Below, in pieces: positions 5,215 through 45,146 of a DNA stretch of 64,000 nt. Source of the DNA: Schmidtea nova (taxonomy: Eukaryota); the NCBI GenBank assembly GCA_044892505.1, contig CM097882.1, positions 75,082,001 to 75,146,000 on the forward strand, written 5' to 3'. The first letter of the stretch is position 1. Every line of letters starts with the position of its first letter. Under the pieces are notes generated by a model, which was not told where the DNA came from, did not search any database, and worked only from the letters and a program-made list of their open reading frames with translations. The position numbers and the translations under genes are program-made.

Positions 5215-5222
5215 AGTCACCA

Positions 5223-19512: not shown

Positions 19513-22500
19513 ATGGTGCAAAATAATGATAATATTAGACATATTTGGCAAAATACAGATGAGGGATGAACCTTAAAAGTTTAATGACTTTTTCGATGAA
19601 ATTACCAAGTATGCAGAAACTTGTGGGTGGACAAGAGATGAATTAAAAAGAAGAATACCGTTATATTTAAAGGGTTATACATTACAAGAATATAATAATT
19701 TAGAGTGTAAGTGTAGAAACTTGAAGATTTAGTCGATAATTTGAGAGGTGAAATAGTAATTGAGCGAGATTTACAAAAGATAAATTTTCAAAAATTTCGA
19801 AATAGATATCAAGGTAACAGAGAAACAATTGGGGAATATGTTTATAAATTTAACCGAATTAGCCCGAAAAGCCTTTGGTGTAGGAGAACATACTACAAGA
19901 TTAATAGAGGATCAATTTTGGAATTTTATTCAGAAACATTTATATAAATCTCTGATAATGGTAAAATACGAGGATTTAAATGAGTTAGTATAAAAAGCAC
20001 GAAGAATTAAAGCCATACAAAGGGATAGATTTAATTCTGCGATTGATGCAGTAGAAATTCAGGAAATTGAAAAAGAAAAAATTAAGGTAATTGATAAAGA
20101 TGATAACATCCCTTGGGAGGAGATGAAACAATTATATCTAAATTATGTTAAGAATAGAAGAAGGACTAGTCCAAGTCCAAATCGTAGTTTAATAACAATA
20201 ATAGATTTAGTAGTCGGAATTTAATGATGGAAATACTTATGTAGAGAACCATAGAAATAATTATTATGATCAAGAAAGTAGGGGTCGAGGAAATTATAAC
20301 AGGAGTAGTCGTTTTGGAAATAATCGTTACGATAATAATCGTTTGTGTTAATCAGAGTTACAGGGCTAATTATTTCGAACATACTCGAACAAATCGATTT
20401 GATGAAAATAGAAATAGTGATAATATAAATAATTTTGAGTGAAATAGAAACAAATTTAGAGAAAGGAGAATGAGCTCTGGTCGACAAACTTTAAATAGAA
20501 ATAGACGACTTAGTCCATTTAATAATGATGAAAAAGATAAAGTTAATTTTCGCGGAGAAATAAGATGTTTTAACTGTCAGAAATATGGCTATATGGCAAA
20601 AGCATGTAAAAATACACGTGTCGAATCACCGAATAGAGTTCAATTTAAGAAGGAGCCTGAAGTTAAGCAAATAAATAGTATGTAGGTTAAAGAATCGAAT
20701 AATGAAATTGAGATGATGAGAGATTAATTACAAGAATATAAAACAAAATATGAGATTAATTAAAAGGAATAAAATCAATGTATCGATAAATGAATTCAAA
20801 AGTTTTACAAATAAAGTTAAGATAGAAAATGAAGAGTTGAGACAACAGAGAGAGAAAGATGAACAATTTTAGCAGAATTAGATAGACAAATTATTTTGAA
20901 ACCTGAATTAGAGGAATCTTTAATAAATTATCTAGTAGATGATAACGAAGTGTTGAGAATATTAAATAAAATTCATGTAGAAGGAATAAATCTGGAGAAT
21001 ATGAGAAATTTGATACCATTATTACTAAAGAAAGCAACACGAATATTTGAATTAGAAGTTGAAATTAAAGGTGTTGAAATGTTATAGTGATTATGTCCGA
21101 AGAAATGAAAGAAATAAGGAACCACTAGAAATTACATTAGAAACATGATAAAGATACGACGAGAATCATTGTTCATAAACAAGGGGTACATGCGTGTTCT
21201 AAGGTAAAAAAATATGAAACAAATAGGCAGAGAAAATTGGTAGAGCGAATTAAGAATAAATGATAAAATAATATTATATTTTTCTGGGATAAAGATGCAA
21301 ACGAAGATTGTTTATTGGGTTACGGGCTAAATGCCAGCGAAGATAATGTGATAACAGTCTCAATAAAAAGAGGCTTAGGGGTAACTTTAGATGAACAGAT
21401 AGTTAATAAGAAAATTTCAAAATCAGGTTTAGATAAAGAAGATAATGAGGATAATGCAAGAGGAGCTATAGGAGATATAATAACCCCAACGTTGGAGGAA
21501 AAGAGACTCCCAAAAGCCGAGAATAATAGTATTGCTGAGAAACTAAAAGAAATTGCAAACAAAACGTCAAAGAAATATAAGGACGTTGACGTTCTAATAG
21601 ATTTAATAAAAATCATGTATCCTAAATTATATGTGGACACAAAAACTCCATAATTTTTATTAATATATAAAAAAATTAAAATTATAGAATCAGAGATAAA
21701 AAATTAATAAAACAGGAAGATGAAGTTCTAGACACCTTATTTGCCACTGGAATCGATGAAAATGAAATTATAACGGCGTACCGTTTTTGTAGAGCAGATA
21801 ATGTTATAAATATGAAACCGAAGGAATTGAGTAAAATAACGAAAAAGATATTTACGAAGTTACAAAATAATGTGATACCATGGAGACATACGAATGGAAG
21901 CTGAAAAATCTCGTAATGAAAATGTTTCAATAGACTTGGACGTAGAACAGCAATATATTGAAGACAGAGAAATTAAAAGAAATCTGAAAAAGATAATAGA
22001 TAAAACAATGAGAAAATTAGGGAAAAGTGATCATAAATTGTTAATGTCTACAATAATAATGATGATAACAATATTATTAAGTATAATAAAAGGATGTACG
22101 GGCATGATAGCATACGACTCAAAATCCAAAATGGGGACAAAATTATTCATTATTAGATATAGAAAACTGTCCAGGAGCAAATCCAATCAATCTAATTACA
22201 ACCGAACCTAAATTTTTTCACGTATATCAGGAATCAGATTTAATACACACCGAAGCGAGAGAATGTATAATTAGATATTCTGAAGAGGCTTTTGTATGCC
22301 ACAGCATAGAACGGATAATCTTAAGGCATTCATTTAATCCGGATACTATTACGGTAACTCCAAAAGAAGGTGAACTTGCATTTAAATAAAAAAAAATAAA
22401 GATACGTGAAATTGAATTAAAAGCACAGATATGTACAAGCGTAAAACAACCAGTTGATGTAGTTGGATGGTCTTCACATGGTGGAGAATAAAAGATATTG

Positions 22501-23450
22501 GGGCATACCATAGAAAATGCTATTGTGATATATATATAGTCGAGCTTAGACAATTTAAAGCATCTTTCAAAAGTATAACACAAAAGATGATGATATATCC
22601 GTTCTGTACATCAAAAGAAATAAGTTGCGATAGCGGAGAATCAATCATGATATATAAAGTCGATTCTTACGAATGTCCTTTGACTAAACTAAAATCACTA
22701 AAATAATGACAATAAAAGGCAGACAATTTACAAACTCAGAATCAACAAAAATAAAAGATAAAAAACGAAAGACAATTGTGGTTCAAGAAAAAGATACAGC
22801 AATGATATACATGGCAGAATCTTCAGGAGAAGCAATGAGATTTATAAACAAATAACTATGTGTTAAATGTAAAAAATCGAAAATGCAGACCAATTATAAG
22901 GGTATATATTTAAGCAAAGATGAAATAAAAGATGCAAAAATAAAAATCAATAAATACGATGTCAAACTTTCATCATACTTTAATAAGAAGATAGATTACT
23001 TTTACCATCACCAACTGATCCAACTAGATAGAGTTTACGAAGAAACTATTATCAATGATTGTAAGCTTAACCGAAAAATCCTAAGGAAAAAGATGGCATT
23101 AGCTATCACGAATCCACACTTAATGGCCAAATTCTCTTCTCAGAACGAGGTGCATTTGCAAGAGTTGAAGGGGAAGTATTACAAACCTGTCAATGTAAAC
23201 CAGTCAGTGTAGCAATAGCTACAAACAAATAATGTACAAACGAAATTATATACCAAAAAAGATAGACAAATGTACAAATTTACTAGATACTTTATATTAA
23301 CTAGATGATGAAACATGGATAACAATGTCAGATAAAAAGGTAGCAATAGCACCCTTTAAACTAGAAATGACAGAATTAGTTAATTTGTCTTTTGAAGAAA
23401 TTCACCACGAATATCACCAAGAAGTCGAGGATAATAGATGGAATTCAAAT
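19513..23450 (+). pseudogene. Decayed relative of the 29680-44890 element: Gag - helical/Ubl - Bcl-2-like - signal peptide - chuvirus-type glycoprotein
   Basis: Gag RRIPLYLKG and FQKFRNRYQGNRETIGEY; knuckle CFNCQKYGYMAKAC; helical module 20896-21087; Ubl tail LLGYGL..ITVSIKRGLG; Bcl-2-like 21719-21904; MIAYD; HVYQESD..RECIIR; TNYKGIYL..NKKIDYFYH..IINDCKLNR. All are collinear with the intact polyprotein. No LTR or pol seen. Confidence 0.85.
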
Positions 23451-28523: not shown

Positions 28524-29679
28524 AAAAATCGGTTTCTAGGTCACAAATCACAATATTTAATTTTCAATTAATTTAATTGATTAATATTTTTATTTTGTTA
28601 TAAACAGCAGACGATGATTATAATAAACAAATAACATTATGGTCAATGAAATATATAATCTTTGGTTTGTCTTTATGAGCAAAGACATTAAATTATAAGA
28701 CGTCAATTCTCCCAACAATCTTGCAACAGATGATAAATCAGTTTGACTCTAAGATAAACTTACTAGTTTCCAGTTGAGAATTTGGTACTTGGATAAGGAA
28801 ATGTTAGACTATCGAATTTATGGACGGAGTGAACACAGTTTTTAACTTTTTATGTTATTTAAACGATTGAAATAAATAAATACAGCTTTGTGACTTGCAA
28901 AATTGGAAATTGAAATTATTGAATAAAGTATGTTTTATTCTTGAAAAGGCCCCACTTTTTGAAAAATGGTCTCAGGGGGAGCGGCTGCTCCCCCTGCTCC
29001 CNNNNNNNNNNNNNNNNNNNNNNNNNNNNNNNNNNNNNNNNNNNNNNNNNNNNNNNNNNNNNNNNNNNNNNNNNNNNNNNNNNNNNNNNNNNNNNNNNNN
29101 NNNNNNNNNNNNNNNNNNNNNNNNNNNNNNNNATCGCAAAAAACAAAATAATAAAAAATACATGAAATAAAATTTAACTTGTTGCTAATATTTAGCCGGA
29201 ACACAAACAAATCCTAAGCGTTTTTTAGCCAAGACACAAACTAACATTAAAAAAATTTTCGCCTGCGGTGCTTTAACTTTTTTGCCCGGGGCGCTGAAAA
29301 CCATAGGGCCGGTCCTGAGTGTAACTTATTCTTTTAAGAAATTCTTTTCTGTATAATAATGGTTTTTACTTTTTACAAGGTTCAACAGATAAAATAATTG
29401 TATATCCCTGTCAATTTAACCAATTAATCATGTTTATTCAGACTTATTTTTAATTTCAATATATATATATATATAAGATGAAAATTATCTACTTAAAAGA
29501 ATTTTTTTTTCTTTAATTTAATGTAAAATTTTGATATTATTTAACTATTCAAGTGTGACGATACAGCCGTAGATTTGGAGAAATTTTATCTAGTTCGAGT
29601 GGCTGTTTTTAGGTGCTATCCAAACAAATTTTAACTACCCTGTTGCAGGGAATACTTTTTAAATGGAATCTTATACTGG

Positions 29680-30034
29680 TGTTAGGATCAGGCCTTTGGC
29701 CTTAACGTTTTGAGGTTTTAATAATAGTAATAATAAATTACTAAAAATAATTAAAATAAAATAAAAATAATTTAAAAACAATTGTAAAACAAATATAGAA
29801 ATAAACATTTACTAAAAATAGAACCAGGCCTTTGTCTGGTAATTGCTAGAACACATTGGACTATAATCGGCAATTATTTATCAACAAAATCGACGTAGGT
29901 CGATTTAATTTTAGTATAAATAATATTGAATTTCAGTTCAGAGGGGACGACGAGACGAATAGAAAAACAACGTGTGAGAGAAAAATAATTAATTTAGAGT
30001 GAACATTGATCGATAACCTACCGCATCGAAAGTT

Positions 30035-30069
<35 letters not shown>

Positions 30070-30675
30070 GGAGAGAACTGTTAATATTTTTGGGAGAAAA
30101 AGAAAGAGCAAAGAAACAGAAAGGAGGAAAAGAATAACATTGTTTTGAAAAGAAGTAATTTTTTAAATTGGTCTAAAAACGTTTATAAAGTAGAGAGTGA
30201 AAGATAAATTTATCTTTTTGGGTTGAAAAATCATTTTAGTTGATATTAATTTTTAAAGCGAATACAAAGTAAAGAAGAATTACTTTAGTATTCTCTGGGT
30301 GCCCCAAAATCATTCCGCTTGCTTATCCACTCTTGTAAAAATATTTCTTAGCGATCGTTGTGTTACTGAGGTGCCAACGATTTCTTGCAGACTGTCACAA
30401 ACAGTAGGGATTAATTTAATCCGAGATCTTTATTGTTCTGTACATCGATAAATTTTGTGAATAATTTAATTATTGTTTTGTAAATTGGTTAAATAAAATT
30501 TGAAAAGAATAGTTAGTTTTCATTTACAGATTTTACCTGTCTTTAAAATACACGCAACCACATTAATTTTGTTATATTTATATTTATTCATTTATTTATA
30601 TATAACAACTTATATAGATATAAAATAGGAGTCAATTTGTGTTAAGATCAGCACCCCTATCTTTTGATCTTGACA
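29680..30675 (+). repeat. 5' LTR (996 bp)
   Basis: TGTTAGGATC...TCTTGACA, with internal (TA)n. Confidence 0.97.
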
Positions 30676-30678
30676 TTT

Positions 30679-30696
30679 TGGTGAGCCCGACGTGAT
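30679..30696 (+). promoter_or_regulatory. Primer-binding site, tRNA-Trp-type
   Basis: TGGTGAGCCCGACGTGAT; one mismatch to the complement of the animal tRNA-Trp 3' end (TGGTGACCCCGACGTGAT). Confidence 0.85.
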
Positions 30697-30809
30697 CATT
30701 TTTCGGGGGATATAAAAATATTATTTATCAGAAACAGTTTTCTTTTTAAATCATTGAGTTAAGAAATAGGAGAATAAATTTTAGACCAGGAAATAGAAAT
30801 CAACAGATA

Positions 30810-33800
30810 ATGGCAGACATAAATAATTTACAAAATGATAATAATTTACAAAATAATGTCAATAATAATAATGTGCCAGTAGCTCAACCACCAGCGGTAG
30901 ATTTTATGAGATACCCAACAATACCAATTAAACCATTTAGTGGGAACCCAGGAGAGTTTCCAGAATTTATGTCCGAATATTTTCAGTTAGCCAGAGCATT
31001 AGGTTTCCCTGAACCGGTAATGATTTTGAGATTACCTTTATATCTAAAAGGGATGGCGCGTGAAATATATAATGATGTTATTATAGCCGAGCATCCAGCT
31101 GAATGGAATGTATTACGGTTAGCGTTACAAAATAGAATATTACCGGGGGATGCAACCAGAGTGCTAAGACAACAATTTTATAATAGGAGACAGAATTTGG
31201 GTGAGCATGTTGGGGAATTTTCTTATCAAATATTAATGTTGGCAGAGAGAGCTTTTGGCGATAGGGCAGCTTGGAATGAGGCAACCAGAGCGTTAGTAAA
31301 AGACCAGTTTTGGTCAGGGTTATCGTCCGCAATGAGAAACGCACTCAGTTTACATATAGGGGATAATTTAGAGGAATTAACTCGTAAAGCTTGCTTAATT
31401 GAAAGTAGTATAGAGAAGTTAAATAATTTCGCAATTAGTACCAATAAGTCCGACATTGAGTGTTTTAACTGTCATAAAAAAGGCCACATATCTAAAGATT
31501 GTAGGAGTAGGAATAATCCCATAGGGGAAAAATCATGTACCAAATGCGGGAGAAACAATCATGTGGCGGCAAACTGCAGATTTTCGGACTTGAGTTGTGA
31601 GAAATGTAAACGCAAGGGACATGTAGCGTCAGTGTGTAAAGTTAGGTTTGGGGAGACTACCTCTAGTAATAATTTTAATAATAATAGAAATAGAAGCCCC
31701 GATAGAAATTTTCAGAATAATAATAATAATAAAAATTTTCAGAATAAGAGTAATAATTTTTCAAATAATAATATAAAGAGGGATGAAGTGAATTCGGGGG
31801 GTAAAATTAAATGTCATACGTGTGGAAAATTTGGTCATATTATGCGTTCATGTCCACAAAATCAGTTGAGTAATAACAATAACAGTAATAACAATAATAG
31901 TAATAGTCGACCGAAACAGACTACGTTTACAGTGAATTCTGATCACAAATTAACATATTTACAGCAGCTTGAATTAGAAATTCAAGAAGAGAGAAATAGG
32001 TTAGCCAGGCTAACGACAAATGAAATCGATGAATACGGCGAAGATGAAGCCGAGGTGTATATGTTGTCAGCCAGAAAAGGGCGCAACAAAGATAATAATA
32101 AACAGAGTAAATTAAGTAATGATATTGTAGCAGAACTTGAGGTATTGATGCTTCAAGAGAGTCCACAGGAGGACCAAGAGGAAAAGGCTATGGTCGTAGA
32201 ACCAGAGGCTTGTGAGGGTTTACCGGTTTCACCCAGGAAAAATCGAGTGGCTATGGTCACAGAACCAGAGGCCAACAGGGAAATAGAAGGTTTACCGGTT
32301 TCACCTAGTAAAAATCGTAAAGCCATGGACATAGATCCAGTGGCAAATAGAGGATATCCAAAAGAAGTTTTGGAAAAACGATGGGCTTCGGTCAGTGAGC
32401 CGGAAGTCTTAATAACCACATCATCCCTGAGAAATGATGGTGGCAGCAAACCGATAAAAGTTAGAGAGGCATCGAAAGAGGAAGGTAATCCCATCGATGA
32501 TTGTAAAATGCTATTACGTCATAGGAACGTATGGCAAAGAGAAATAGAACAGAGGCTAGAAAATATCAGATTAAACCCCATTAACGAGAATGAGGTAGAT
32601 AAAATAATGGATATCATATTAGAATTAAATAGAAATGATGAGTACCATCCGGTATTAAGAGAAATCCTGCGAAGCATAGGATTAAGTTGGAAGCAAAAAG
32701 GAGATCTAGAAGATTCCATAGTTTTTGTTGTCCTACCCAGAGGTTGTTTTTGTAGATATACAATAAACCCAAGAGAAAAAGTCGAAGCACTAGCCAAGAA
32801 AGTCGCTGAGGTAAAACCTCGATTGAAATGCGAACTATATTTGTTGGGAGAAAGATTATTGGAGGGAGAAGCCTTACTAGATTGTGGTATAATACCAGGA
32901 AAACAAATGATAGTAAAAGCAAAGTTTCACAAGGAAACTGTCACGATAGTGGACTCTGATAATGTCCTAACCATAACGGAAATGGAAATTGAACAATTAA
33001 ATCAAATATCAGCGGTACCACAAAGGTTGGGGACAGAGCTGATGCAAAACCCGAGGGACGGGGAAACCATTAAGATGATAATGGATTGGATATTGGAGTT
33101 ACGAATTCCAGTAGATACTCTTAGAGAGGTTATGCCATTGGTGGTGCCTTTATTGAAAGAAACATCACCATTCCAAACGCAAGCAAAGATGCTAGTAATC
33201 AAAAATGGGCATGCTATTAGACACCAGGATAATAGGCAAGGTCCAGTCATGTTAGATATCAGGATACCCAGGAGAGGACACCTGATACAACAATTTTCGT
33301 GTTTCCATAAAGTCAAGAAACTGAGGAAACGAGTGGCGACAATAGTAAAAGAGTCATTTATAATAATGATACACGGTTGTCAGGTTGATGACGACGAATA
33401 TTTAGTGGATGTAGGATGTTTTCCTCAAGAGGAAACTATAGTATTGATACTATTGGTCGAGCTTCCAGAGGACCAATGGGCAACACTGAGATTGCCAGAT
33501 GATGCTGAGTTAGAGAAGGATGAGATCCCTCCCGAGCAGCAACAAGCAGGTGAAGATACCCGCCTACAGGCAGGAGAAACAGTAGATTTAGACGCGGAAA
33601 TAGACAAATATTTACGGGAATTCGACAACACTGAGGATCAGTTGATCGAGATAATGCCATCTTTGGAAGATGAAAGTATAAGATTGAATCAAAAAGAAAC
33701 GAACATCGGAGCTAGTACGTCACAGGGAATTGGGCCATCAAGAGATAGGATGAGCCCGAAACTTGTTGTAAACAGGAGAAAGAAGGAGAGAAGGGGGAGA

Positions 33801-36800
33801 CCGAGAAAGAGTCAAATGAACCCGCCTCCAAGAGAACTCCTAAGGCCTACCACGATACAAAGCGTAAACAGGCAGGCTTTGGCAGGGATAGCCAGCCAAA
33901 TTGATAAAGGCACAAGAGATTTTAGTGCTAAAACGGAAACATGGAGGAGATTGAACCAAATATTAAGACTGATGAAGCCTGAGTGGCAAATCAAGAAAGA
34001 TAAAGCTATAAATGTTGAGAAAATTACAAACAAGATTAAACAAGCAATGAATAAGATTCCAGGAAGCACAACTGAACAGGAATTGTTCGAAGTAGCAGGA
34101 CAATTCATGCAAGAAGGGTTGACAAAAGGGAAAATGATAACAATTTTAGCACTAATGTTTAAAAACACCGTAATAATACTCAAGGATGATCCATCAGGAA
34201 TTCAAGTAGCCTTAGACAGGCTGACTGATATCATTGAAGTGAATTTTGAAACATGGATGACGGAACATAAGTTTTGGGAGACAAAAGAAACGAAAGGGAA
34301 ATATGAGATAAATGAGGAATTGTTGACAGAACATATCCCAAGTAATTCGCGGGGAACAGGTGGATTCACTAATTGGATGATGATGTTATTAGTAATGATG
34401 GGAATATTGAGACAGACAAACTCCTTAACAGCATACGACTGTAGCGAACCGATATTAGCACGGATTTACTCATTGGTAGACACAGTGGAATGCAAGGAAG
34501 CATATCCAGATAAAGTTGCAAAACGAGAGGATGCAGAATACCATGTTTATCAGCAAACAGAGTTTTATAGGACCAGGGTGAGGGAATGTCGAATACAGAG
34601 AGCGACATTTGAATATTACTGTGGATCACACAGTTATACAGCGTTTCTAGGAGCTAAGCTCATTCCAGTACCATTGATAATCCCACCAGAGGATTGCATA
34701 AATGCTTTTAGATCAAAAAATGTCAAAATAGATGACGAAGTGACAATCACAGCAGAGGAAGGAAAGAAGCTGGGTATAACGATTACCAGAGGAGGACCGA
34801 TAGCAGATGATGGTTCTTGCACCGGTAGAAAGAAATTAAGAGGTTCTAATATTGTGAGTTATGTAGTAACAGTTGAGGATTACACTGTAGAGCTAATAGA
34901 ATACGAAGGAACATTTGAAGTATCCACGGGTAAAATGATGTCCCATCCTGAATGTAATGTAAAGTTTGGGTATTGTAAAACCAGTACAGCGGTACTGACG
35001 TATCAATCAATGAGAGAATTTTGCGATTTGGGATACTTGAAAAAAGTAGTGTTTTCAAGACTTGATGGGAAAAGTTTTGCAGCACAAGAGTCACACCAAA
35101 GCGGGTGGGGAGATAAGATAAACCACAAGACGAAAAAAGAGAAAGTACCCGAGAAAAGCACAGCAGTAGTTTTAGTCGCAAAAGATCCTACCGATGCTAT
35201 CCGACTAGTTAGAAAGAAGCAGATAACAAAATGTGGTGTGCCAATATTCGAAACGAACTATAAAGGAATATTCTTAGCATACAAATATGTGCCGGCAGCA
35301 GAAACATTACATTTGTCAGATATAAAAATAGCGAAATATATCAATAATAAAATTGACTTTTTGTATCATGATTTACAGAAGCAACTATTAGACGTTTACC
35401 AGGAAGTGATCTTAAACGATTGTCGTTTAAACAGGGAAATAATACGAAATAGATTAGCAACATCTATTTCGAACCCTGATTTAGTAATGCCAATGTTAAC
35501 CGAGGAGGGAACATTTGGTAGAATTTTGGGAGAAGCAATTTATAGCTATCAATGCAAAGCGGTGGAGGTAGAAATAACCAAATACGATCAATGCACTTTA
35601 GAGCTTCCAGTAAAATATAAAGGAAAATTAAGATTTATGATACCAGTATCACATCAGTTGATGGGAGAAGAGGCAACTCCATTGAAGACAATTTGTAATC
35701 CGGCAATGTCACCACTATACAAAATTAACAATATATGGATTTCCTTACCAGACAGGAAACCACCTTCTAAACCAGTAGAAGTGTTGCAGGCTACTAAATT
35801 AGAAAACAAAATGGAGTTTCGACCATTAAATGAGATGTCAAAAGGGGGAGTATATACTCAAGAAGATATTGAGGAAGCGAGGAGAGCAATAGTGTTTCCT
35901 CAAATCAGAGATAGAGGAGTGACAGAGATAATAACTAGAATTTATCAATCATACGACGGAAAACCGGACTATAATTTATTATTTGGACCGGAACACTACA
36001 AGCAAGCCGCATCAAATGTGATACGGAGAATCTGGGGAAGATTCACAAGCTTCGGAATTTTTGTAGCAGGATGTTCAGGCATATACGCCATAGTGATGAT
36101 ATTGAAAATAATCATATCACAATTATTTTCCACATATAGTATCTTCAAGATCGGAGGATGGTCTTGGAAGTTGCTATTGGGAATGTGCCCACTTTGTGCA
36201 GATTTCGCAGTATTTCATCATCACAATAAAGAAATCAAGAAAATGAAAAGACAAAATGAAACAAAGCACGAAATAATAAAGTATGAATATAGTCATCGAG
36301 ACGATGACAATTCTGACGAGGGAGGTAACCTAGAGGGCGACAAGACCTCATATAACACCTCAACAAAACCAGACAACAAAAAACCGAATTTTCAAAATTT
36401 TGAAACTAGTACTTTTCAACAGTACCCTGTTAAAACAAAAAGACGAAAACAACAGGAATGGCCTGTGAAATATGTGTCTCCATATGAAACTAGGAGAAAG
36501 ATAATACCAGAAAAAGTAGAAGAGGAGATGTTGAGGCGTTTCGATTTTAGGACAAACGCAGGTATTTCAGCACCTCCTATACATTCAGAGTATCACATGA
36601 ATTTCGAGACAATGCCACCTTTGGGAACATCGATATTGGAAACGGTACCAAAATATCCATTTAGCACGTTAGAGAGGCTAAAGGAAAATTATCAAGATGA
36701 AATAAAATCGGAAGACGACAGAGATAGCGAGAATCAACAGAAATTCAGAGATAATATTCGAGGAATATCAACAGTGTTTATGGTAAATTCCAGCAAAAAG

Positions 36801-39800
36801 ACGCACAAGCCTACAATTAAATTAAAGGTTAATAGGCATACGGTTCATGCCATTATCGATTCAGGTTCAGACGTAACGCTGGTCGAAGCAAATTTATTAA
36901 ATGAAAAAGAATTACAAGCAATAATACAGACATTAACTATTACATCAGGAGCAAATGGTCAGCCAATCAATGTTATCGGGACATTAGATTGTGAGCTAAG
37001 GCTATGTGATCAGAAATTTAGACACGATATCAAGGTCACCAGACAGTGTATGGCAGAATGTATCGTGGGAATGGATATATTAAAAAAGTTAAAAGATATA
37101 GTATTTGATTGTGCAACAGGCGAATTGGTAAAAATGACGGGTAGAAAACGGAAAACATACAGTGTTGATGTAGTTTTTCTGGATAGATCAGTGAAAATAC
37201 CACCAAGAACCGAAACAGTTTGTTTTGTAGCAACACACCAAGAGGTCGAGGGAGATGTTATTTTCGAACCCAGTGAGCAGTTCATGAACAGATATAAAAC
37301 ACCTATGGTGCAGAATTTGGCAACAGTACGGGGAGGAAGAATCCCAATTAGATTAACGAATCTAGCGAATAAATCATTGAGGTTGTACCCAGAGACGAGA
37401 GTGGGTAAAGTGATACAACTTTCCAATCCTAGGAAAGAGTCGGAATCAACATTATCGGTGAGTGAGGAGGAACGAGATCCCGATATTGAATATTACGATG
37501 CACCTAGTTGTGATAGTAAAACGTTAACGAGAAAAGAGAATATTAGAGTTAATCAATTATTACGAAGATATGATCAAGTTTTTGCAAAGCACGAATATGA
37601 CTTAGGGCAAGTTAATATTTTAGAGCATGAGATTAAACTAACAGAGAGTAAACCAATAAAGATACGTCCGTATAGAATACCTCAAAGTATACAAGGGTCC
37701 GTGGATAAACAAATAAAATTAATGCAAAAGTATAATATAATCAGACCAAGTAAATCTCCATATTCTTCACCCTTGGTGGTTGTAGCTAAGAGAGATGGTT
37801 CCGTTAGATTGTGTAATGACTATAGGAAATTAAATGAACAAACTGTGAGTGATAATCACCCACTACCTTTGTTAGATTATATATATGATAAAATGAAAAA
37901 TTCGAAACTGTTTACTGTGATGGATGCACAGAAAGGATTCTATCAAATAAAAATGAGCGAAGACTCAATTCCTATGACAGGATTTTCGACTAGTAGTGAT
38001 CATTTTGAATATTTAGTAATGCCATTTGGACTAAAAGGAGCACCTCCAACTTTTCAGAGGGCTATGAATATTATGCTGATGGATGCACATCACGCAATGG
38101 TATATATTGACGACATTATCATTTTCTCGGAAGATTTAGATAAGCATTTAGAACATCTTGAGGATATTTTTAAACGGTTAATCATGGCAAACTTGAAAGT
38201 TAAACCAAGTAAATGCAAGTGGGCAGAATCGGAGGTGATTTACGTAGGGCATGTAATATCACACGATTGCGTAAGACCAGACCCGGCTAACACGGATAAA
38301 GTAAAGAATTTCCCACAACCAGTGAACGTGAAACAAATTAAAGGATTTCTAGGGTTGACGGGATATTATAGAAAATTTATTAGGAATTTCTCTGCAATCG
38401 CCTTTCCTTTGACCACGTTAGAAAAGAAAGGAGTAAAATTTTTATGGGGAGAGGATCAGCAGCAAGCATTTGATAAGTTGAAAGATGCATTATGCAAACC
38501 TCCAATCTTACGATTTCCAGATTTTAAAAGACAATTCATGGTGATGACAGATGCATGCACAAGAGGTATAGGTGCAGTATTGGGACAGAAAGATGAAATA
38601 GGTGATGAATACGCAGTAGCATACGCAAGTCGTGGGTTAAAGCCACACGAAAAAAGTTACGCAGTGATAGAATTAGAAGCACTGGCGTTAGTATTTGCAG
38701 TGGAAAAATTTAGTCATTACCTATGGGGCAGAAAGGTAATTTTCTATACCGATCATAGACCATTGCAATGGCTGTTAAAACATAGGGATGAAGCGTCAAA
38801 ATTGGTAAGATGGGCATTGAGATTACAGCCCTATAATATTGAGATTGTTTATCGAAAAGGAAAAGCCAATGGAAATGCAGACGCATTATCTCGGATGGAA
38901 CAAGAACCGGAGGTCGAAGATGTAAAGGAAGGAAGACTTGAAGGAACTATCTTCATGTTAACAAGAGAAGCAAATACGATAACGGACTTGGTAGAGGCGC
39001 AGAAAAGTGATGACGAGATCAACATGATCAGACAAGCAATCGAAGCAAAAGCTATACCAAGCGAATTTCAAAAATATTGGGAAAAACATAAGGATAAATT
39101 TATCCTAGAGGAAGGATTAATTAAATATGCGGAGACAAGAGATAATGTAATATTAGTGCCAAAGAAGTATAGAGAATCGTTGTTATTACAATATCACGAC
39201 GGAGCACTGGGAGGACATCTCTCAGCAAGACATACATTGTCTAGATTGAAAACAAAATATTTCTGGCCAGATATGAAAGAGGATGTAAAGAAGTGGTGCC
39301 AAACGTGTAAAATATGCATGACAAGGAGGAACACAGGTAAGAAACCTCATGTACCTCTAAAACCTATGCCAGTACCATCCTCGCCGATGGAGATGACTGC
39401 TATGGATGTACTGGGGCCGTTTAAAGAATCAATGATGGGAAATAAATTTATACTAGTCTTCTGTGACTACTTAACGAAGTGGCCGGAAGCATTTCCGATT
39501 CCAAACCATAAAGCCGACACAATTGCCAGAATATTTGTCGAGCAGATTGTATTTAGGTATAGAGTTCCATCAAAACTGCTTACCGACAGAGGGAAGGATT
39601 TTATGAGCAATTTGCTAAAAAGCATAAATGATTATTTTGGGATATTAAAGCTGAACACCTCACCATATCACCCACAAACGGATGGATTGGTGGATAGGTT
39701 CAATGGAACTTTGGCAAATATGTTATCATCATATGTGAACTCAGGACAGACGGATTGGGATGTGCATATACCGTCATGTTTGTTTGCTTATAGGAATGCA

Positions 39801-40328
39801 GTACATTCAGTTACAGGAGAAACACCTTTTTATCTAATGTACTTAAGGCATAGCAAGATGCCAGTGGATCTCATATTTTATCCAAAGGCTTCGCAAAATT
39901 GTGACGAAGGGAATTATTTATTTGAAATGAGAGAGAGAATGCAGGAAGCTTGGGAGAAAGCAGGCTTAAAAATTCGTTATAACCAGGAAACTATGAAAGA
40001 ATACCATGACCGTAAAGCAAAGGAGCATGGATTCTTAGTAGGAGATTATGTCATGTTAGAGGGACATTATAATAAAAAGGGTTTGTCCCCGAAACTTATG
40101 AGGAATTACAAAGGGCCAGATCAAATATTAAAGGCCACAGAGACAAATTTGATTTTACAATCAGTAGCGAACAAGAAAGCAGAACCAATCATGGTTCATG
40201 CAAACAGATGCAAAAAGATAGCTCCACCGGAAAAAGAAAAGCCAAAATCAGAAATAGATGAATTCGAAATAGATAAGAAATCAAAAAAGAAAACTTTGGA
40301 ATCATATAAAAGTATCCTAAAGGGTTAA
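30810..40328 (+). CDS. 3172-aa polyprotein: Gag-4xCCHC-2x(helical+Ubl)-AT-hook-Bcl-2-like-signal anchor-chuvirus-type glycoprotein-TM-PR-dUTPase-like-RT-RNase H-IN
   Basis: Uninterrupted ORF. Knuckles 31461-31853; Ubl 32718-32930 and 33246-33458; RRGRPRK 33789-33809; Bcl-2-like 33867-34280; signal 34374-34424; glycoprotein 34425-36215; IIDSGS (D at 36858); YIDD (38103); TDACTRG and YTDHRPL; integrase HHCC and D-D(35)-D. Confidence 0.95.
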   Translation: MADINNLQNDNNLQNNVNNNNVPVAQPPAVDFMRYPTIPIKPFSGNPGEFPEFMSEYFQLARALGFPEPVMILRLPLYLKGMAREIYNDVIIAEHPAEWNVLRLALQNRILPGDATRVLRQQFYNRRQNLGEHVGEFSYQILMLAERAFGDRAAWNEATRALVKDQFWSGLSSAMRNALSLHIGDNLEELTRKACLIESSIEKLNNFAISTNKSDIECFNCHKKGHISKDCRSRNNPIGEKSCTKCGRNNHVAANCRFSDLSCEKCKRKGHVASVCKVRFGETTSSNNFNNNRNRSPDRNFQNNNNNKNFQNKSNNFSNNNIKRDEVNSGGKIKCHTCGKFGHIMRSCPQNQLSNNNNSNNNNSNSRPKQTTFTVNSDHKLTYLQQLELEIQEERNRLARLTTNEIDEYGEDEAEVYMLSARKGRNKDNNKQSKLSNDIVAELEVLMLQESPQEDQEEKAMVVEPEACEGLPVSPRKNRVAMVTEPEANREIEGLPVSPSKNRKAMDIDPVANRGYPKEVLEKRWASVSEPEVLITTSSLRNDGGSKPIKVREASKEEGNPIDDCKMLLRHRNVWQREIEQRLENIRLNPINENEVDKIMDIILELNRNDEYHPVLREILRSIGLSWKQKGDLEDSIVFVVLPRGCFCRYTINPREKVEALAKKVAEVKPRLKCELYLLGERLLEGEALLDCGIIPGKQMIVKAKFHKETVTIVDSDNVLTITEMEIEQLNQISAVPQRLGTELMQNPRDGETIKMIMDWILELRIPVDTLREVMPLVVPLLKETSPFQTQAKMLVIKNGHAIRHQDNRQGPVMLDIRIPRRGHLIQQFSCFHKVKKLRKRVATIVKESFIIMIHGCQVDDDEYLVDVGCFPQEETIVLILLVELPEDQWATLRLPDDAELEKDEIPPEQQQAGEDTRLQAGETVDLDAEIDKYLREFDNTEDQLIEIMPSLEDESIRLNQKETNIGASTSQGIGPSRDRMSPKLVVNRRKKERRGRPRKSQMNPPPRELLRPTTIQSVNRQALAGIASQIDKGTRDFSAKTETWRRLNQILRLMKPEWQIKKDKAINVEKITNKIKQAMNKIPGSTTEQELFEVAGQFMQEGLTKGKMITILALMFKNTVIILKDDPSGIQVALDRLTDIIEVNFETWMTEHKFWETKETKGKYEINEELLTEHIPSNSRGTGGFTNWMMMLLVMMGILRQTNSLTAYDCSEPILARIYSLVDTVECKEAYPDKVAKREDAEYHVYQQTEFYRTRVRECRIQRATFEYYCGSHSYTAFLGAKLIPVPLIIPPEDCINAFRSKNVKIDDEVTITAEEGKKLGITITRGGPIADDGSCTGRKKLRGSNIVSYVVTVEDYTVELIEYEGTFEVSTGKMMSHPECNVKFGYCKTSTAVLTYQSMREFCDLGYLKKVVFSRLDGKSFAAQESHQSGWGDKINHKTKKEKVPEKSTAVVLVAKDPTDAIRLVRKKQITKCGVPIFETNYKGIFLAYKYVPAAETLHLSDIKIAKYINNKIDFLYHDLQKQLLDVYQEVILNDCRLNREIIRNRLATSISNPDLVMPMLTEEGTFGRILGEAIYSYQCKAVEVEITKYDQCTLELPVKYKGKLRFMIPVSHQLMGEEATPLKTICNPAMSPLYKINNIWISLPDRKPPSKPVEVLQATKLENKMEFRPLNEMSKGGVYTQEDIEEARRAIVFPQIRDRGVTEIITRIYQSYDGKPDYNLLFGPEHYKQAASNVIRRIWGRFTSFGIFVAGCSGIYAIVMILKIIISQLFSTYSIFKIGGWSWKLLLGMCPLCADFAVFHHHNKEIKKMKRQNETKHEIIKYEYSHRDDDNSDEGGNLEGDKTSYNTSTKPDNKKPNFQNFETSTFQQYPVKTKRRKQQEWPVKYVSPYETRRKIIPEKVEEEMLRRFDFRTNAGISAPPIHSEYHMNFETMPPLGTSILETVPKYPFSTLERLKENYQDEIKSEDDRDSENQQKFRDNIRGISTVFMVNSSKKTHKPTIKLKVNRHTVHAIIDSGSDVTLVEANLLNEKELQAIIQTLTITSGANGQPINVIGTLDCELRLCDQKFRHDIKVTRQCMAECIVGMDILKKLKDIVFDCATGELVKMTGRKRKTYSVDVVFLDRSVKIPPRTETVCFVATHQEVEGDVIFEPSEQFMNRYKTPMVQNLATVRGGRIPIRLTNLANKSLRLYPETRVGKVIQLSNPRKESESTLSVSEEERDPDIEYYDAPSCDSKTLTRKENIRVNQLLRRYDQVFAKHEYDLGQVNILEHEIKLTESKPIKIRPYRIPQSIQGSVDKQIKLMQKYNIIRPSKSPYSSPLVVVAKRDGSVRLCNDYRKLNEQTVSDNHPLPLLDYIYDKMKNSKLFTVMDAQKGFYQIKMSEDSIPMTGFSTSSDHFEYLVMPFGLKGAPPTFQRAMNIMLMDAHHAMVYIDDIIIFSEDLDKHLEHLEDIFKRLIMANLKVKPSKCKWAESEVIYVGHVISHDCVRPDPANTDKVKNFPQPVNVKQIKGFLGLTGYYRKFIRNFSAIAFPLTTLEKKGVKFLWGEDQQQAFDKLKDALCKPPILRFPDFKRQFMVMTDACTRGIGAVLGQKDEIGDEYAVAYASRGLKPHEKSYAVIELEALALVFAVEKFSHYLWGRKVIFYTDHRPLQWLLKHRDEASKLVRWALRLQPYNIEIVYRKGKANGNADALSRMEQEPEVEDVKEGRLEGTIFMLTREANTITDLVEAQKSDDEINMIRQAIEAKAIPSEFQKYWEKHKDKFILEEGLIKYAETRDNVILVPKKYRESLLLQYHDGALGGHLSARHTLSRLKTKYFWPDMKEDVKKWCQTCKICMTRRNTGKKPHVPLKPMPVPSSPMEMTAMDVLGPFKESMMGNKFILVFCDYLTKWPEAFPIPNHKADTIARIFVEQIVFRYRVPSKLLTDRGKDFMSNLLKSINDYFGILKLNTSPYHPQTDGLVDRFNGTLANMLSSYVNSGQTDWDVHIPSCLFAYRNAVHSVTGETPFYLMYLRHSKMPVDLIFYPKASQNCDEGNYLFEMRERMQEAWEKAGLKIRYNQETMKEYHDRKAKEHGFLVGDYVMLEGHYNKKGLSPKLMRNYKGPDQILKATETNLILQSVANKKAEPIMVHANRCKKIAPPEKEKPKSEIDEFEIDKKSKKKTLESYKSILKG

Positions 40329-41318
40329 CCAGAACGATACCCTTTACGATCTAGACAAATTCCCAAAACGGTTACATTTTTAACTGTAATCAGTTGTGTT
40401 ATGATGTTGGGTCAAGCATTTGAGAAGTTTGTACCAAAGTCAAGTCAACATCCTGATATCGAATATCATCGAACGGATAGGGCATTCAGATTTTATTTAA
40501 AAAATATAGAATGGCATCGTTACGATTTATATTTGACAACCCCTGAGAAAGGAATATCTTTTCACTTAAACAAATGGGATAGAGTGAAAGAAATTGGAGG
40601 ACTAATGCCAAACACCGGATATCTTTTAGAAATAAAGACATTCTTTGCGGATCCAGACGTTTTTGCAGACGGAGGAAACTGTGATGACAAAGCGGGATGG
40701 ATTTTGAAAACAGCAATATTCACGGAAAAAGTAGAGATTTCTTATCAGGAACAAACGGTAAAATTCACGCATGAATACTGGATGAAAAATAACAGAATTT
40801 TGCTTATATATATATTAGAAAATATGAAAAGAGTTAAAAGATTGGTACTCAACCAATCATATCAAGTTCGGAAATGGACAATACAACCAAAAATGAATAC
40901 AAAAGCCAATATAACATACTTGGAGTTTTCGGAGACGGGGAAAATTGGTTGGTACACAGTACATCATGAACTAGTAGATCTGGTACCACGTGAATGGAAC
41001 AAACCAACTAGCAAGAAAGGGAGAGCTAGATTAGTGAATATTCCTGGGTGTAAAGGAATAAGCGAAACAGATTTGAGAAACCTAAGAAAGGTAGTGAGTG
41101 AAATGCAACCTCGCGTAAATAAACTTCTAACTAATTGCAGTTGCCAAAGAGAAACTAAGGGGATATTACAAGTTAAAATGCCAAATTGGCTATTTGTAGT
41201 TATAATAGGGGGAGTAACCAGTATGGTTTTAGCATTAGTTATAGCAACCCTTTGGATGTTTCGTTTAACTTTAAGGGACAAGCGATATTGGGAAAACTAT
41301 TATGAAACTGAGGTGTAA
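40329..41318 (+). CDS. ORF2: type I membrane glycoprotein with FN3-like ectodomain, in frame with pol after a single TAA (track start 40401)
   Basis: Signal-like VTFLTVISCVMMLGQA; IGGLMPNTGYLLEIKTF (FN3 GLxPxTxY motif); sequons NQS, NIT, NCS; TM WLFVVIIGGVTSMVLALVIATLWMF; tail ends YYETEV. Confidence 0.75.
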   Translation, partial: PERYPLRSRQIPKTVTFLTVISCVMMLGQAFEKFVPKSSQHPDIEYHRTDRAFRFYLKNIEWHRYDLYLTTPEKGISFHLNKWDRVKEIGGLMPNTGYLLEIKTFFADPDVFADGGNCDDKAGWILKTAIFTEKVEISYQEQTVKFTHEYWMKNNRILLIYILENMKRVKRLVLNQSYQVRKWTIQPKMNTKANITYLEFSETGKIGWYTVHHELVDLVPREWNKPTSKKGRARLVNIPGCKGISETDLRNLRKVVSEMQPRVNKLLTNCSCQRETKGILQVKMPNWLFVVIIGGVTSMVLALVIATLWMFRLTLRDKRYWENYYETEV

Positions 41319-41529
41319 GGGGAAAGTCTCACCAGAGAATAGGTAGTGTAAATATATATATATATAAATATTTATTTGATATTAGTATTTATAATTATGT
41401 AGATAAATAATGTGGGCTCAAAGGAGCAACTGTAAAATCAAACATCAGCGTATGTTGACTGGGTTTACCCTGGGAGGGTCTATCACGAAAGTGATAAAAG
41501 CTGTTAATTATTTTATTTTTAGATAAAAT

Positions 41530-42834
41530 ATGAACCTTAACGAAGAATCAAGAGTCCAGACAAAATCAAACAGAACACACCCAATGATTTCCTACAGTTC
41601 CCAAATGAAAAGCAATATAGAGGTATACAGTACATACAAAGAGGAGTATGTCTACAGGTTCATAGGAACCACGGTGGCGGCAAAGATGAACCATCTTACG
41701 TCAAATTATTGGTATTATCCAAGGAGAGTGGATATCCCAAACGATTACAAATTCCCTGGTGGACCCCAAAGGCAAATGATGGTGACGGTTGTAAACAACC
41801 AAGGAAGAATCAAAATAGCAGATTTATGTAGAGAGTATGGCTCATGTCCAAAGATAGAGAATATATGGCTCCATGCGATTAATCGAGCGATTACCGTGTT
41901 TATGGCTGGGATGGAACTACCAGTGGAACTAGGCAAGCATTGCACATTGGAGGTGTATCATGCCGATGGTAGGGAACGTAATATAATGTTACAAGCATCC
42001 GCAGCAAATACTATTATCGCGGTGGAAATATTGGATTTTAAGAAACCTTACCAGTTTGTGAATCGGAATGAGCCTACATGGATTTACAACGTTAACGAAG
42101 AAGATCTCCAGCAAAGTAGATCGTTCGTAAGAAGGAACATGACAAAAGAAGAAGAAGACGAAGCCACAGTTTTTGTATCAGCCGGATTTGCCAAGTCGAG
42201 GATAAATTTGAAAGAAACACTTATCCAGATAGCAATCCTGGATATAAGAGGAAATAATTTATTAAGTGCGGTAGTAACTCCCAAGGATCCAGTTAAGCAC
42301 TACCAGACGCACCAATATAAATTAAAAGAACAAGAAATCCGTGGAAATTTCGACGAGGATGATTGCCACCATTTAATACGAAAGATTTGCGACAAGAAAA
42401 TAGTTGTGGGCATTCTAGTAAAGGATTTACTCAAGGTAGCCAATCTACCAGTGCAGAGACTATTAGGCATCCGTGATTTATCTGCGAATAAATTATTAGA
42501 ATCCCGGGGAGTCCCTAAGATTCATGGGTATTATAGATTGGGATTTCTGACGAAGACATTTCTGCGTACAGTGCCGGGAGAACCAAGAAATTTGGTGGTT
42601 ACCAATGAGGCATTAGCAATTAGGGCTATATATCTACATATTAGAAATGAATGGCTAGACCATATTAGTGTGCCTCAGGTAGAAATTAGGACAACAACTA
42701 CGGTAGAGATAGTTGAACAGGAAGCTTTACAAAAGCAGACGTTACCCGAATTGCCATCTACATCGAAGCAACCCCATTTAAAGAGAAGGGAGAACATACC
42801 AGAAGATCTTCCACCACCCCAATTATATCGATAG
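41530..42834 (+). CDS. ORF3 (434 aa): unknown N-terminal half plus REX4/ISG20-like DEDDh exonuclease fold lacking catalytic acids
   Basis: 42163-42654 aligns by eye to REX4-family motifs: IAILDIRGNNLLSAVVTPKDPVKHYQT, KIVVG..DLLKV, IRDLS, EALAIRAIY..W. Confidence 0.75.
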   Translation: MNLNEESRVQTKSNRTHPMISYSSQMKSNIEVYSTYKEEYVYRFIGTTVAAKMNHLTSNYWYYPRRVDIPNDYKFPGGPQRQMMVTVVNNQGRIKIADLCREYGSCPKIENIWLHAINRAITVFMAGMELPVELGKHCTLEVYHADGRERNIMLQASAANTIIAVEILDFKKPYQFVNRNEPTWIYNVNEEDLQQSRSFVRRNMTKEEEDEATVFVSAGFAKSRINLKETLIQIAILDIRGNNLLSAVVTPKDPVKHYQTHQYKLKEQEIRGNFDEDDCHHLIRKICDKKIVVGILVKDLLKVANLPVQRLLGIRDLSANKLLESRGVPKIHGYYRLGFLTKTFLRTVPGEPRNLVVTNEALAIRAIYLHIRNEWLDHISVPQVEIRTTTTVEIVEQEALQKQTLPELPSTSKQPHLKRRENIPEDLPPPQLYR

Positions 42835-42965
42835 GTGAAGAAGATGAATATGAAACATGTACCAGCGAAGCAGAACAACTGCAACCATCTACCAGCGCTG
42901 CCTATCAGCGAAAGGGTGAGGCAAAAATCACGCCTAGTAAAGACAAACGGGAGACAGGCAAAGTC

Positions 42966-43598
42966 GTGGGAATCCTTAAGAAGATCATACCGGTAAAAAG
43001 AGACAAATCAAAGATGAAGTTGAAAAAGATAGTCAAACAACCAATCGAGAAGAATAAAGAATTACCCCAAAAGGAAAAAGAGAAAACAATAGCCGCTAAG
43101 AAAGTTTTTGCCGAAGGTGATGAGGATATAATGGAAGTCGATTTCCAACCTCCAATAAAGGAATTACAGGAGGAAATAAGGGTAAAGACAGAACCCGAAG
43201 TCCGGCAAAAGATGTTAAAAATCGCCAAAGAAAATATCATAAAGAAGCCTGTGTCAGTGGATGTTGATGGATTTGAACCAATGTGGTATAAACGCCCAGA
43301 CCCTTTATGGAAACCTAGAGCCAAAGACTATGACTGCCAAGCAGTCACAAGAATGGCCATAAATAACAACGAAAGATACGATGTATATGATGTGGATGGA
43401 ATACCTTATGTGGCATCATCGCTTATATTAACAAGCGCATTAGATGATAAAGTTATGGCAGTAAGCTTTGAGTTAGACACTCTTAAGAAAAGAAAACAAA
43501 TACTAAAAAGGCAGTACGCAATTGCTAACGGTTATAGCACAACAGAGGTACATCTGTACAAAGTTCCCGAGCCAGATCCCGATGACCTGGATGTCTAA
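42966..43598 (+). CDS. ORF4, orphan basic/acidic protein (first ATG 43014; frame open from 42717)
   Basis: Intact 210-codon frame inside the LTRs; no recognisable domain. Confidence 0.55.
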   Translation: MGILKKIIPVKRDKSKMKLKKIVKQPIEKNKELPQKEKEKTIAAKKVFAEGDEDIMEVDFQPPIKELQEEIRVKTEPEVRQKMLKIAKENIIKKPVSVDVDGFEPMWYKRPDPLWKPRAKDYDCQAVTRMAINNNERYDVYDVDGIPYVASSLILTSALDDKVMAVSFELDTLKKRKQILKRQYAIANGYSTTEVHLYKVPEPDPDDLDV

Positions 43599-43867
43599 TC
43601 AACACAAGTTGCCTATCAACAACGTCGCAAAGCAAGTAGTGTAGCTATAAAAGACTTGAATTTTTTTTCGTGACTTACCTAACAGTTTATATTTGATCTT
43701 GACTTTTAAAGTATCCTTTGACGTTTATTATATCCTTGTGGTGTACAAATATAAAAATGACTTTCAATCATTTATTAATTTATTTTATGATTTATTTTTA
43801 TGTGTTATGTAAATGCTGTTTGTGACAAGCAAAGTGTCTTATCTTGTTTTCGAGACGAAAATCTTTT

Positions 43868-43878
43868 AGGGGGTAAGA
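43868..43878 (+). promoter_or_regulatory. Polypurine tract
   Basis: AGGGGGTAAGA just before the 3' LTR. Confidence 0.75.
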
Positions 43879-43880
43879 CT

Positions 43881-44235
43881 TGTTAGGATCAGGCCTTTGG
43901 CCTTAACGTTTTGAGGTTTTAATAATAGTAATAATAAATTACTAAAAATAATTAAAATAAAATAAAAATAATTTAAAAACAATTGTAAAACAAATATAGA
44001 AATAAACATTTACTAAAAATAGAACCAGGCCTTTGTCTGGTAATTGCTAGAACACATTGGACTATAATCGGCAATTATTTATCAACAAAATCGACGTAGG
44101 TCGATTTAATTTTAGTATAAATAATATTGAATTTCAGTTCAGAGGGGACGACGAGACGAATAGAAAAACAACGTGTGAGAGAAAAATAATTAATTTAGAG
44201 TGAACATTGATCGATAACCTACCGCATCGAAAGTT

Positions 44236-44284
<49 letters not shown>

Positions 44285-44890
44285 GGAGAGAACTGTTAAT
44301 ATTTTTGGGAGAAAAAGAAAGAGCAAAGAAACAGAAAGGAGGAAAAGAATAACATTGTTTTGAAAAGAAGTAATTTTTTAAATTGGTCTAAAAACGTTTA
44401 TAAAGTAGAGAGTGAAAGATAAATTTATCTTTTTGGGTTGAAAAATCATTTTAGTTGATATTAATTTTTAAAGCGAATACAAAGTAAAGAAGAATTACTT
44501 TAGTATTCTCTGGGTGCCCCAAAATCATTCCGCTTGCTTATCCACTCTTGTAAAAATATTTCTTAGCGATCGTTGTGTTACTGAGGTGCCAACGATTTCT
44601 TGCAGACTGTCACAAACAGTAGGGATTAATTTAATCCGAGATCTTTATTGTTCTGTACATCGATAAATTTTGTGAATAATTTAATTATTGTTTTGTAAAT
44701 TGGTTAAATAAAATTTGAAAAGAATAGTTAGTTTTCATTTACAGATTTTACCTGTCTTTAAAATACACGCAACCACATTAATTTTGTTATATTTATATTT
44801 ATTCATTTATTTATATATAACAACTTATATAGATATAAAATAGGAGTCAATTTGTGTTAAGATCAGCACCCCCATCTTTTGATCTTGACA
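43881..44890 (+). repeat. 3' LTR (1010 bp)
   Basis: Same as the 5' LTR apart from a (TA)n tract 14 nt longer and one T>C near the end. Confidence 0.97.
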
Positions 44891-45146
44891 CTGGGTTTTT
44901 GTTGTTTTCAATGCTTATATTTGTACAGCTTAGCAAGAGTTAATTGATTTATTTTTTAAACTTTGATATATTCTAATTGCTGATAAAATTACGCAGAGAT
45001 CATTAGCGAAAATCTCGCTACAGATAAAATATATCTTAATAAATGATATGGAAAAAAGTATCCTTTCATGCATTTAATTTTACTGAACATTGGTTAACTG
45101 TATTTTGTTAATTTTACGTAAATTGATTTATTATATGTTTGAATAA

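Follow-up and report, generated by a model that had tools for sequence, protein, structure and literature searches.

The closest described counterparts of the locus reported here are the Burro elements (GYPSM1), giant gypsy-like elements of more than 30 kb found in the planarian Schmidtea mediterranea and a relative (PMC6431247). Burro encodes Gag with its CCHC knuckles within one huge open reading frame (ORF) of 4873-5140 amino acids (aa), and this ORF1 contains a Ubi2/SUMO-like motif followed by a BCL2-like motif, an in-frame envelope gene (env) and the protease (PR) (PMC6431247). In the text of their review, Arkhipova & Yushenova (2019) credit the BCL2-like motif to Grohme et al. 2018 (PMC6431247). 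The env between BCL2 and PR matches fusion glycoproteins of arthropod and fish mononegaviruses, and the elements also carry MATH/TRAF, BIR, ankyrin and dUTPase domains as well as accessory ORFs (PMC6431247). Here, we analysed 64,000 nucleotides (nt) of the Schmidtea nova assembly GCA_044892505.1 (contig CM097882.1, positions 75,082,001 to 75,146,000 of the forward strand), hereafter the window, whose numbering is used throughout. It contains a complete, very young, 15.2-kb env-carrying element of Ty3/gypsy type with long terminal repeats (LTRs) at 29680-44890. Within the polyprotein of this compact element, aa 1008-1160 probably form a diverged Bcl-2-fold domain that is the counterpart of the Burro BCL2-like motif, with a guardian-type job as its most likely role.

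Comparison with Burro and other env-carrying retroelements

Compared by the description given in the review, the S. nova element has the same core order as Burro: Gag with CCHC knuckles, a possible ubiquitin-like region, a probable Bcl-2-like domain, an in-frame env and then protease, reverse transcriptase, RNase H and integrase (PR-RT-RH-IN). Both are LTR elements with a Ty3/gypsy-type PR-RT-RH-IN and a CCHC Gag at the start of the same ORF. In both, the env lies in frame between gag and pol and is of the mononegavirus fusion glycoprotein type, and both carry accessory ORFs. However, the S. nova element is only half the size of Burro (15.2 kb vs >30 kb, with a polyprotein of 3172 aa), and Pfam searches at E ≤ 1 found none of the MATH/TRAF, BIR, ankyrin, SMC and dUTPase domains in it. 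As the review already gives the order Ubi-like, BCL2-like, in-frame env and PR, the element is not a new kind: the arrangement has been reported in Burro, and the window provides a compact further example. Within the literature collection searched, no further paper brings together planarian, BCL2 and gypsy.

The capture of such a glycoprotein has also been described for mosquito LTR retrotransposons, which took up chuvirus-type glycoproteins (Dezordi et al. 2020, PMC7642597). According to the abstract of that study, an LTR retroelement uses a fusion glycoprotein of the Monjiviricetes/Jingchuvirales type as env, as in the window, whereas a Bcl-2-like domain is not mentioned in the abstract (PMC7642597).

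Sequence searches recover the Bcl-2 family

A preliminary description of this stretch had placed a Bcl-2-like domain at 33867-34424. These positions correspond to aa 1020-1205 of the polyprotein, but the helical domain itself begins earlier, at about aa 1008 (nt 33831), directly after a basic stretch. All peptides quoted in that description are present, either on the plus strand in the polyprotein ORF (30810-40328) or, for the peptide taken from a decayed relative of the element, on the plus strand upstream of a second glycoprotein remnant. The basic run that directly precedes the domain contains an Arg-Gly-Arg-Pro core (33792-33803, plus strand; aa 995-998), which we take to resemble the AT-hook DNA-binding motif.

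To place the domain among known proteins, its sequence was compared with 177,635 PDB sequences. Searched alone, it gave three matches at E ≤ 10, with Bok as the first (E 0.087) and the third (E 0.55), and the Bok alignments run from the BH1 region to BH2. A profile of two rows (A4), composed of the window domain and a 74-codon open stretch of the decayed copy, gave 66 matches, and 57 of the 60 listed belong to the Bcl-2 family. The best scores were obtained for Bcl-xL (E 0.011), Bok (E 0.025) and the fowlpox Bcl-2-like protein (E 0.11). One of the profile alignments to Bcl-xL is unbroken and collinear, covering the BH3 region, BH1 and BH2. When the 74-codon stretch of the decayed copy was searched alone, a BCL-2 chain was among its nine matches (E 0.72), aligned in the BH1-BH2 register. 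Two other segments of the same polyprotein served as controls and gave no Bcl-2 match in the PDB sequence search.

Relatives of the domain in protein databases are scarce. Among 1.84 billion representative proteins searched with HMMER (phmmer), a single true relative emerged (E 2e-25, 45% identity), a gene model of 791 residues (UniParc UPI00060C8625, hereafter P0001) that fuses exons of a voltage-gated calcium channel with the domain, the signal peptide and fragments of the glycoprotein. An element inserted in or next to the channel gene probably gave rise to this chimeric annotation. Relative to the window, its domain (45% identity) and its glycoprotein (42%) are about equally kept. Word-indexed protein searches found nothing with the domain; with the env part, they found only P0001 and a glycoprotein-only protein of 642 aa (P0003). 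Neither P0001 nor the window polyprotein was on record in an exact look-up. The element family is almost unrepresented in protein databases, and every alignment-dependent test is therefore limited.

Within the domain, BH3-, BH1- and BH2-like segments stand in the order and spacing of the Bcl-2 family. At the BH1-like turn, in the register of the NWGR motif, the glycine is retained and the arginine is replaced by lysine; P0001 has Ser-Lys at this turn. Both tryptophans of the BH2-like segment are retained in the window copy and in P0001. The overall identity of the domain to cellular multi-BH Bcl-2 proteins is about 10-17%.

Predicted fold of the domain

Two AlphaFold models of the domain were obtained, the first with two alignment rows and the second with three. 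Each consists of helices only. The fifth predicted helix of the second model (aa 1106-1126) is its most hydrophobic one, and the sixth is 25 residues long; the central hairpin of the Bcl-2 family shows this combination of a hydrophobic fifth and a long sixth helix.

Foldseek searches against the PDB put Bax, Bcl-xL and Bak chains on top for the first model, at E 0.2 and worse. For the second model, all 50 chains among the 50 listed were Bcl-2-family members (Bcl-xL, Bax, Bak, Bcl-2, Bok and placozoan Bcl-2); the best had an E-value of 0.075 and a Foldseek probability of 0.93, and TM scores were 0.24-0.50, the upper value over about 145 columns. Such unanimity is unlikely to arise by chance. 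In a viral structure library, an iridovirus BCL2-like protein came first, and an Mcl-like protein, herpesvirus v-bcl2, the adenovirus E1B small protein and adintovirus Bcl2 were also among the best 31 matches, all with E > 0.4. The central claim of the preliminary description, a Bcl-2-like helical domain directly upstream of the glycoprotein signal peptide in a retroelement polyprotein, is thus supported in that sequence and fold searches alike point only to the Bcl-2 family.

The domain resembles the cellular Bcl-2 proteins Bcl-xL, Bok, Bcl-2, Bax and Bak in its size, its all-helical make-up, the order and spacing of BH3, BH1 and BH2, and the hydrophobic central helix. As in these proteins, a hydrophobic segment follows at the C-terminal side after a short linker. 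In contrast to them, it lies inside a polyprotein of 3172 residues, and what would be the "anchor" is the cleavable signal peptide of the next protein. With the viral Bcl-2 proteins (fowlpox FPV039, iridovirus BCL2-like, herpesvirus v-bcl2 and adenovirus E1B-19K), the likeness is that of a highly diverged Bcl-2 fold in a mobile genetic parasite. However, these are separate genes of DNA viruses, whereas the window domain is part of the polyprotein of a reverse-transcribing element, and all matches to them have E > 0.1.

Strength of the assignment and alternative explanations

The Bcl-2 signal is above chance in a borderline but positive way, and a number of observations weigh against the assignment. 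All E-values of the PDB sequence searches exceed 0.01, and they come from several related searches. The Pfam Bcl-2 family (PF00452) did not match the window domain, P0001 or the decayed stretch at E ≤ 10; for these three sequences, Pfam returned noise matches only (Rpb4, DUF1040). Including P0001 in a three-row profile (A3) brought no gain in score, and the Bcl-2 matches dropped to E ~1, although this profile was swamped by the unrelated calcium-channel tail of P0001. Among the 1.84 billion representatives, the phmmer search returned, besides P0001, only one spurious bacterial repeat protein. In pairwise comparison with the window domain and with P0001, the decayed stretch scores no higher than shuffled sequences, and since its similarity to the window domain is not significant, its row in the two-row profile rests on position. 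An "even clearer BH2", as had been suggested for the decayed copy, does not survive this comparison: the segment fails the shuffle test and has one of the two tryptophans left.

The signature residues also count against the assignment. The Asn-Trp of BH1 and the Gly-Gly of BH2 are lost. In the BH3-like segment, the leucine aligns, but the Gly-Asp pair is replaced and the signature is not matched. Many pro-survival and viral Bcl-2 members lack the BH3 Gly-Asp as well. The AlphaFold models have very low mean predicted local distance difference test scores (pLDDT 35 for the first and 41 for the second). Moreover, with models this weak and a Foldseek score that takes residues into account, the fold matches cannot count as separate from the sequence signal.

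Among the alternatives, we first consider a Bcl-2 fold that has taken on another job. It may block innate-immune signalling in the manner of poxvirus proteins, with BH3 binding lost, or serve as a matrix-like tether that holds Gag beside the glycoprotein at the endoplasmic reticulum (ER) for assembly. Many viral Bcl-2 folds have no role in regulating apoptosis, the groove-forming signature residues of the window domain are degenerate, and its place between Gag and a membrane-inserted glycoprotein in one chain would suit a tether. However, the window copy and P0001 alike retain the basic residue after the BH1 glycine position and the two BH2 tryptophans. Furthermore, the BIR and ubiquitin-related motifs of the Burro relatives point to a theme of cell-death control (PMC6431247). 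On balance, we consider another job for the fold unlikely.

A second alternative is that the resemblance arose by chance, the region being a helical spacer or leader that is peculiar to this family, lies between Gag and the glycoprotein, has no Bcl-2 ancestry and collects weak matches through its helical, hydrophobic-periodic composition. The E-values of 0.01 or worse, the silence of the Pfam Bcl-2 family, the poor models, the loss of most BH1, BH2 and BH3 signature residues and the non-significant similarity between the decayed stretch and the window domain would all be expected of such a spacer. Yet the matches of four kinds of search fall almost exclusively in the Bcl-2 family and always share one register, and the control segments of the same protein gave no such match. 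In addition, an independent annotation based on HHpred puts BCL2 at the same place in the Burro polyproteins (PMC6431247). Chance resemblance is thus quite improbable, and we regard the Bcl-2 fold and homology of aa 1008-1160 as likely.

A Bok-like killer protein, acting by membrane permeabilisation or releasing particles by killing the cell, would fit the best single-sequence matches to Bok, an ER-associated pro-death member, and the lead of Bax and Bak in the first fold list, but it is highly improbable given that the BH3-like segment lacks the Gly-Asp pair needed by killer members, that the profile search puts Bcl-xL first and that the second fold list consists mostly of Bcl-xL and Bcl-2.

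Within the preferred reading of a diverged Bcl-2-fold domain, the guardian type (BH3-binding, pro-survival) is most likely, and a domain of this type would delay the death of the expressing cell. The guardian type is favoured over the killer type because the BH3 is degenerate and the basic residue after the BH1 glycine is retained. This function is the weakest step of the explanation, and a pro-survival activity of the domain is proposed here only tentatively from its sequence features.

The glycoprotein, its internal signal peptide and a proposed membrane topology

The Bcl-2-like domain is followed by a fusion glycoprotein, which had no match in PDB sequences. It has one strong membrane span only, located after the ectodomain (aa 1745-1779; 36042-36146). 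The internal signal peptide in front of it has threonine at position -3 and serine at position -1; the glycoprotein starts at aa 1206 (nt 34425). This hydrophobic segment is located 32 residues after the BH2-like segment. The signal peptide is conserved nearly letter for letter in P0001 and is kept by position in the decayed copy. We also considered that the domain had been brought in together with the glycoprotein from an RNA virus. This origin was rejected on the ground that we know of no Bcl-2 domain in that group of viruses, and none of the search results bears on where the domain came from.

These features suggest a membrane topology for the polyprotein that we consider probable. Gag and the Bcl-2-like domain would be made in the cytosol and remain there. 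The internal signal peptide would then insert the chain in the ER membrane and direct the glycoprotein ectodomain to the lumen, and the single span of the glycoprotein would return the chain to the cytosol, where PR-RT-RH-IN would be made. If signal peptidase cuts after aa 1205, the Bcl-2-like domain would come to lie at the C-terminus of the upstream product. The leftover hydrophobic peptide could hold the domain to the ER on its cytosolic side, oriented like a tail-anchored Bcl-2 protein.

In polyproteins of the flavivirus type, a single hydrophobic segment forms the end of the cytosolic capsid, as its anchor, and also targets the following protein to the ER. By analogy, the signal peptide in the window may likewise end the upstream product and lead the next protein to the ER. 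However, flaviviruses belong to another virus class, and the upstream protein there is the capsid and not a Bcl-2-like domain.

The preliminary description had taken the hydrophobic stretch for a C-terminal anchor that doubles as signal peptide. The segment is indeed the signal peptide of the glycoprotein, but its core of 12 residues, typical for a cleavable signal peptide, is short for a stable membrane span, which counts against a lasting anchor. Owing to this short core and the signal-peptide-like -3/-1 site, anchoring after cleavage can only be inferred, and a double use of the signal peptide as tail anchor of the upstream product is plausible. Production of a pro-survival Bcl-2 protein that is tail-anchored in the ER, with the cut by signal peptidase turning the glycoprotein signal peptide into its anchor, is a possibility that we regard as rather doubtful.

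The element and its surroundings

The coordinates of the element and of its decayed relative are compiled in Table 1.

Table 1 Positions of the features of the env-carrying element and of its decayed relative in the window
Feature	Position	Strand	Details
Target-site duplication	29676-29679 (left copy); 44891-44894 (right copy)		CTGG, 4 bp
5' LTR	29680-30675	+	996 nt, TG...CA ends; followed by a primer-binding-like site starting with TGG
Polyprotein ORF	30810-40328	+	Single, intact, 3172 codons
Gag zinc knuckles	31461-31853	+	Four CCHC units, aa 218-348; Pfam and direct reading
Internally duplicated module	32595-33443	+	Copies at aa 596-702 and aa 754-878
Bcl-2-like helical domain (likely)	33831-34289	+	aa 1008-1160; six long and one short predicted helices
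BH3-like segment	33951-33995	+	aa 1048-1062; profile alignment to the Bcl-xL BH3 region (1r2e_A)
BH1-like segment	34104-34160	+	aa 1099-1117
BH2-like segment	34242-34277	+	aa 1145-1156
Internal signal peptide of the glycoprotein	34365-34424	+	aa 1186-1205; hydrophobic core aa 1189-1200
Fusion glycoprotein	34425-36299	+	aa 1206-1830; Pfam PF24664 Monjiviricetes_fusion, E 2.7e-81
Ty3/gypsy-type pol	36804-39674	+	Protease aa 1999-2095, reverse transcriptase aa 2326-2483, RNase H aa 2546-2675, integrase aa 2783-2955 (Pfam)
Accessory ORFs (three, intact)	40401-41318; 41530-42834; 42966-43598	+	305 aa; 434 aa; 210 aa; between pol and 3' LTR
3' LTR	43881-44890	+	1010 nt; purine-rich tract just before
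Decayed relative	19571-23125	+	Same order: gag, middle region, signal peptide, glycoprotein

The element is regarded as very young and complete because its LTRs are near-identical, have TG/CA ends and are bracketed by the CTGG duplication, and because the ORF is intact. The two LTRs are about 99% identical; a single mismatch and an indel of 14 bases separate them. The polyprotein runs in the order Gag, duplicated module, Bcl-2-like domain, signal peptide, glycoprotein and PR-RT-RH-IN. The window is AT-rich, with about 30% GC overall and 19-41% per 2-kb window, a composition consistent with a planarian host.

Around and between the zinc knuckles, Gag (30810-31900, plus strand) has long asparagine-rich low-complexity runs, which fit an AT-rich genome. 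In the linker from Gag to the middle region (32214-32350, plus strand), a tandem duplication of 65 nt, 78% identical, repeats a peptide containing proline and serine. The self-duplication of the module upstream of the Bcl-2-like domain is evident from a local score of 51, compared to 28.9 ± 4.8 in shuffles. The top PDB sequence match of its first copy was a ubiquitin variant (E 0.73), and the module may possibly be ubiquitin-like.

A coding-like base skew carries on through the three accessory ORFs downstream of pol, and the one of 305 aa has a hydrophobic tail at its C-terminus. No Pfam family matched the accessory ORFs or the flanking ORFs, and the accessory ORFs of 305 aa and 434 aa had no match in PDB sequences.

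In the decayed relative, gag contains at least one frameshift and eight stops. The glycoprotein lacks its C-terminal part and contains at least two frameshifts and one stop; pol is absent. The 74-codon open stretch used in the searches lies directly upstream of the signal peptide of this copy. A second, unrelated Ty3/gypsy-type element at 4156-8114 (plus strand) consists of a gag-like ORF (DUF7041) and an ORF for reverse transcriptase, RNase H and integrase; its pol is about 28% identical to that of the main element. Runs of N, representing assembly gaps or masked sequence, occur at 1941-2273, 2749-3002, 9679-9834 and 29002-29132, the last about 550 nt upstream of the 5' LTR.

Implications

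The locus illustrates how far a Bcl-2 domain can drift and still be recognisable, as Pfam is silent while profile searches of the PDB and fold searches are coherent. The copy in the window is a useful one in being compact, intact over 3172 codons and very young, and it displays the arrangement stripped to its core, free of the additional domains seen in its giant relatives. Together, these traits open the role of a Bcl-2 fold in a retroelement to study through data on structure, expression and distribution.

Large DNA viruses characteristically carry Bcl-2 homologues. To our knowledge, such homologues have been noted in reverse-transcribing elements only as an annotation of Burro and have never been studied there. 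If the reading of an ER tail-anchored pro-survival protein is true, the S. nova element would provide the first case worked out in which a functioning cell-death regulator is carried by a reverse-transcribing element, and the output of this regulator would be coupled one-to-one to the synthesis of the envelope.

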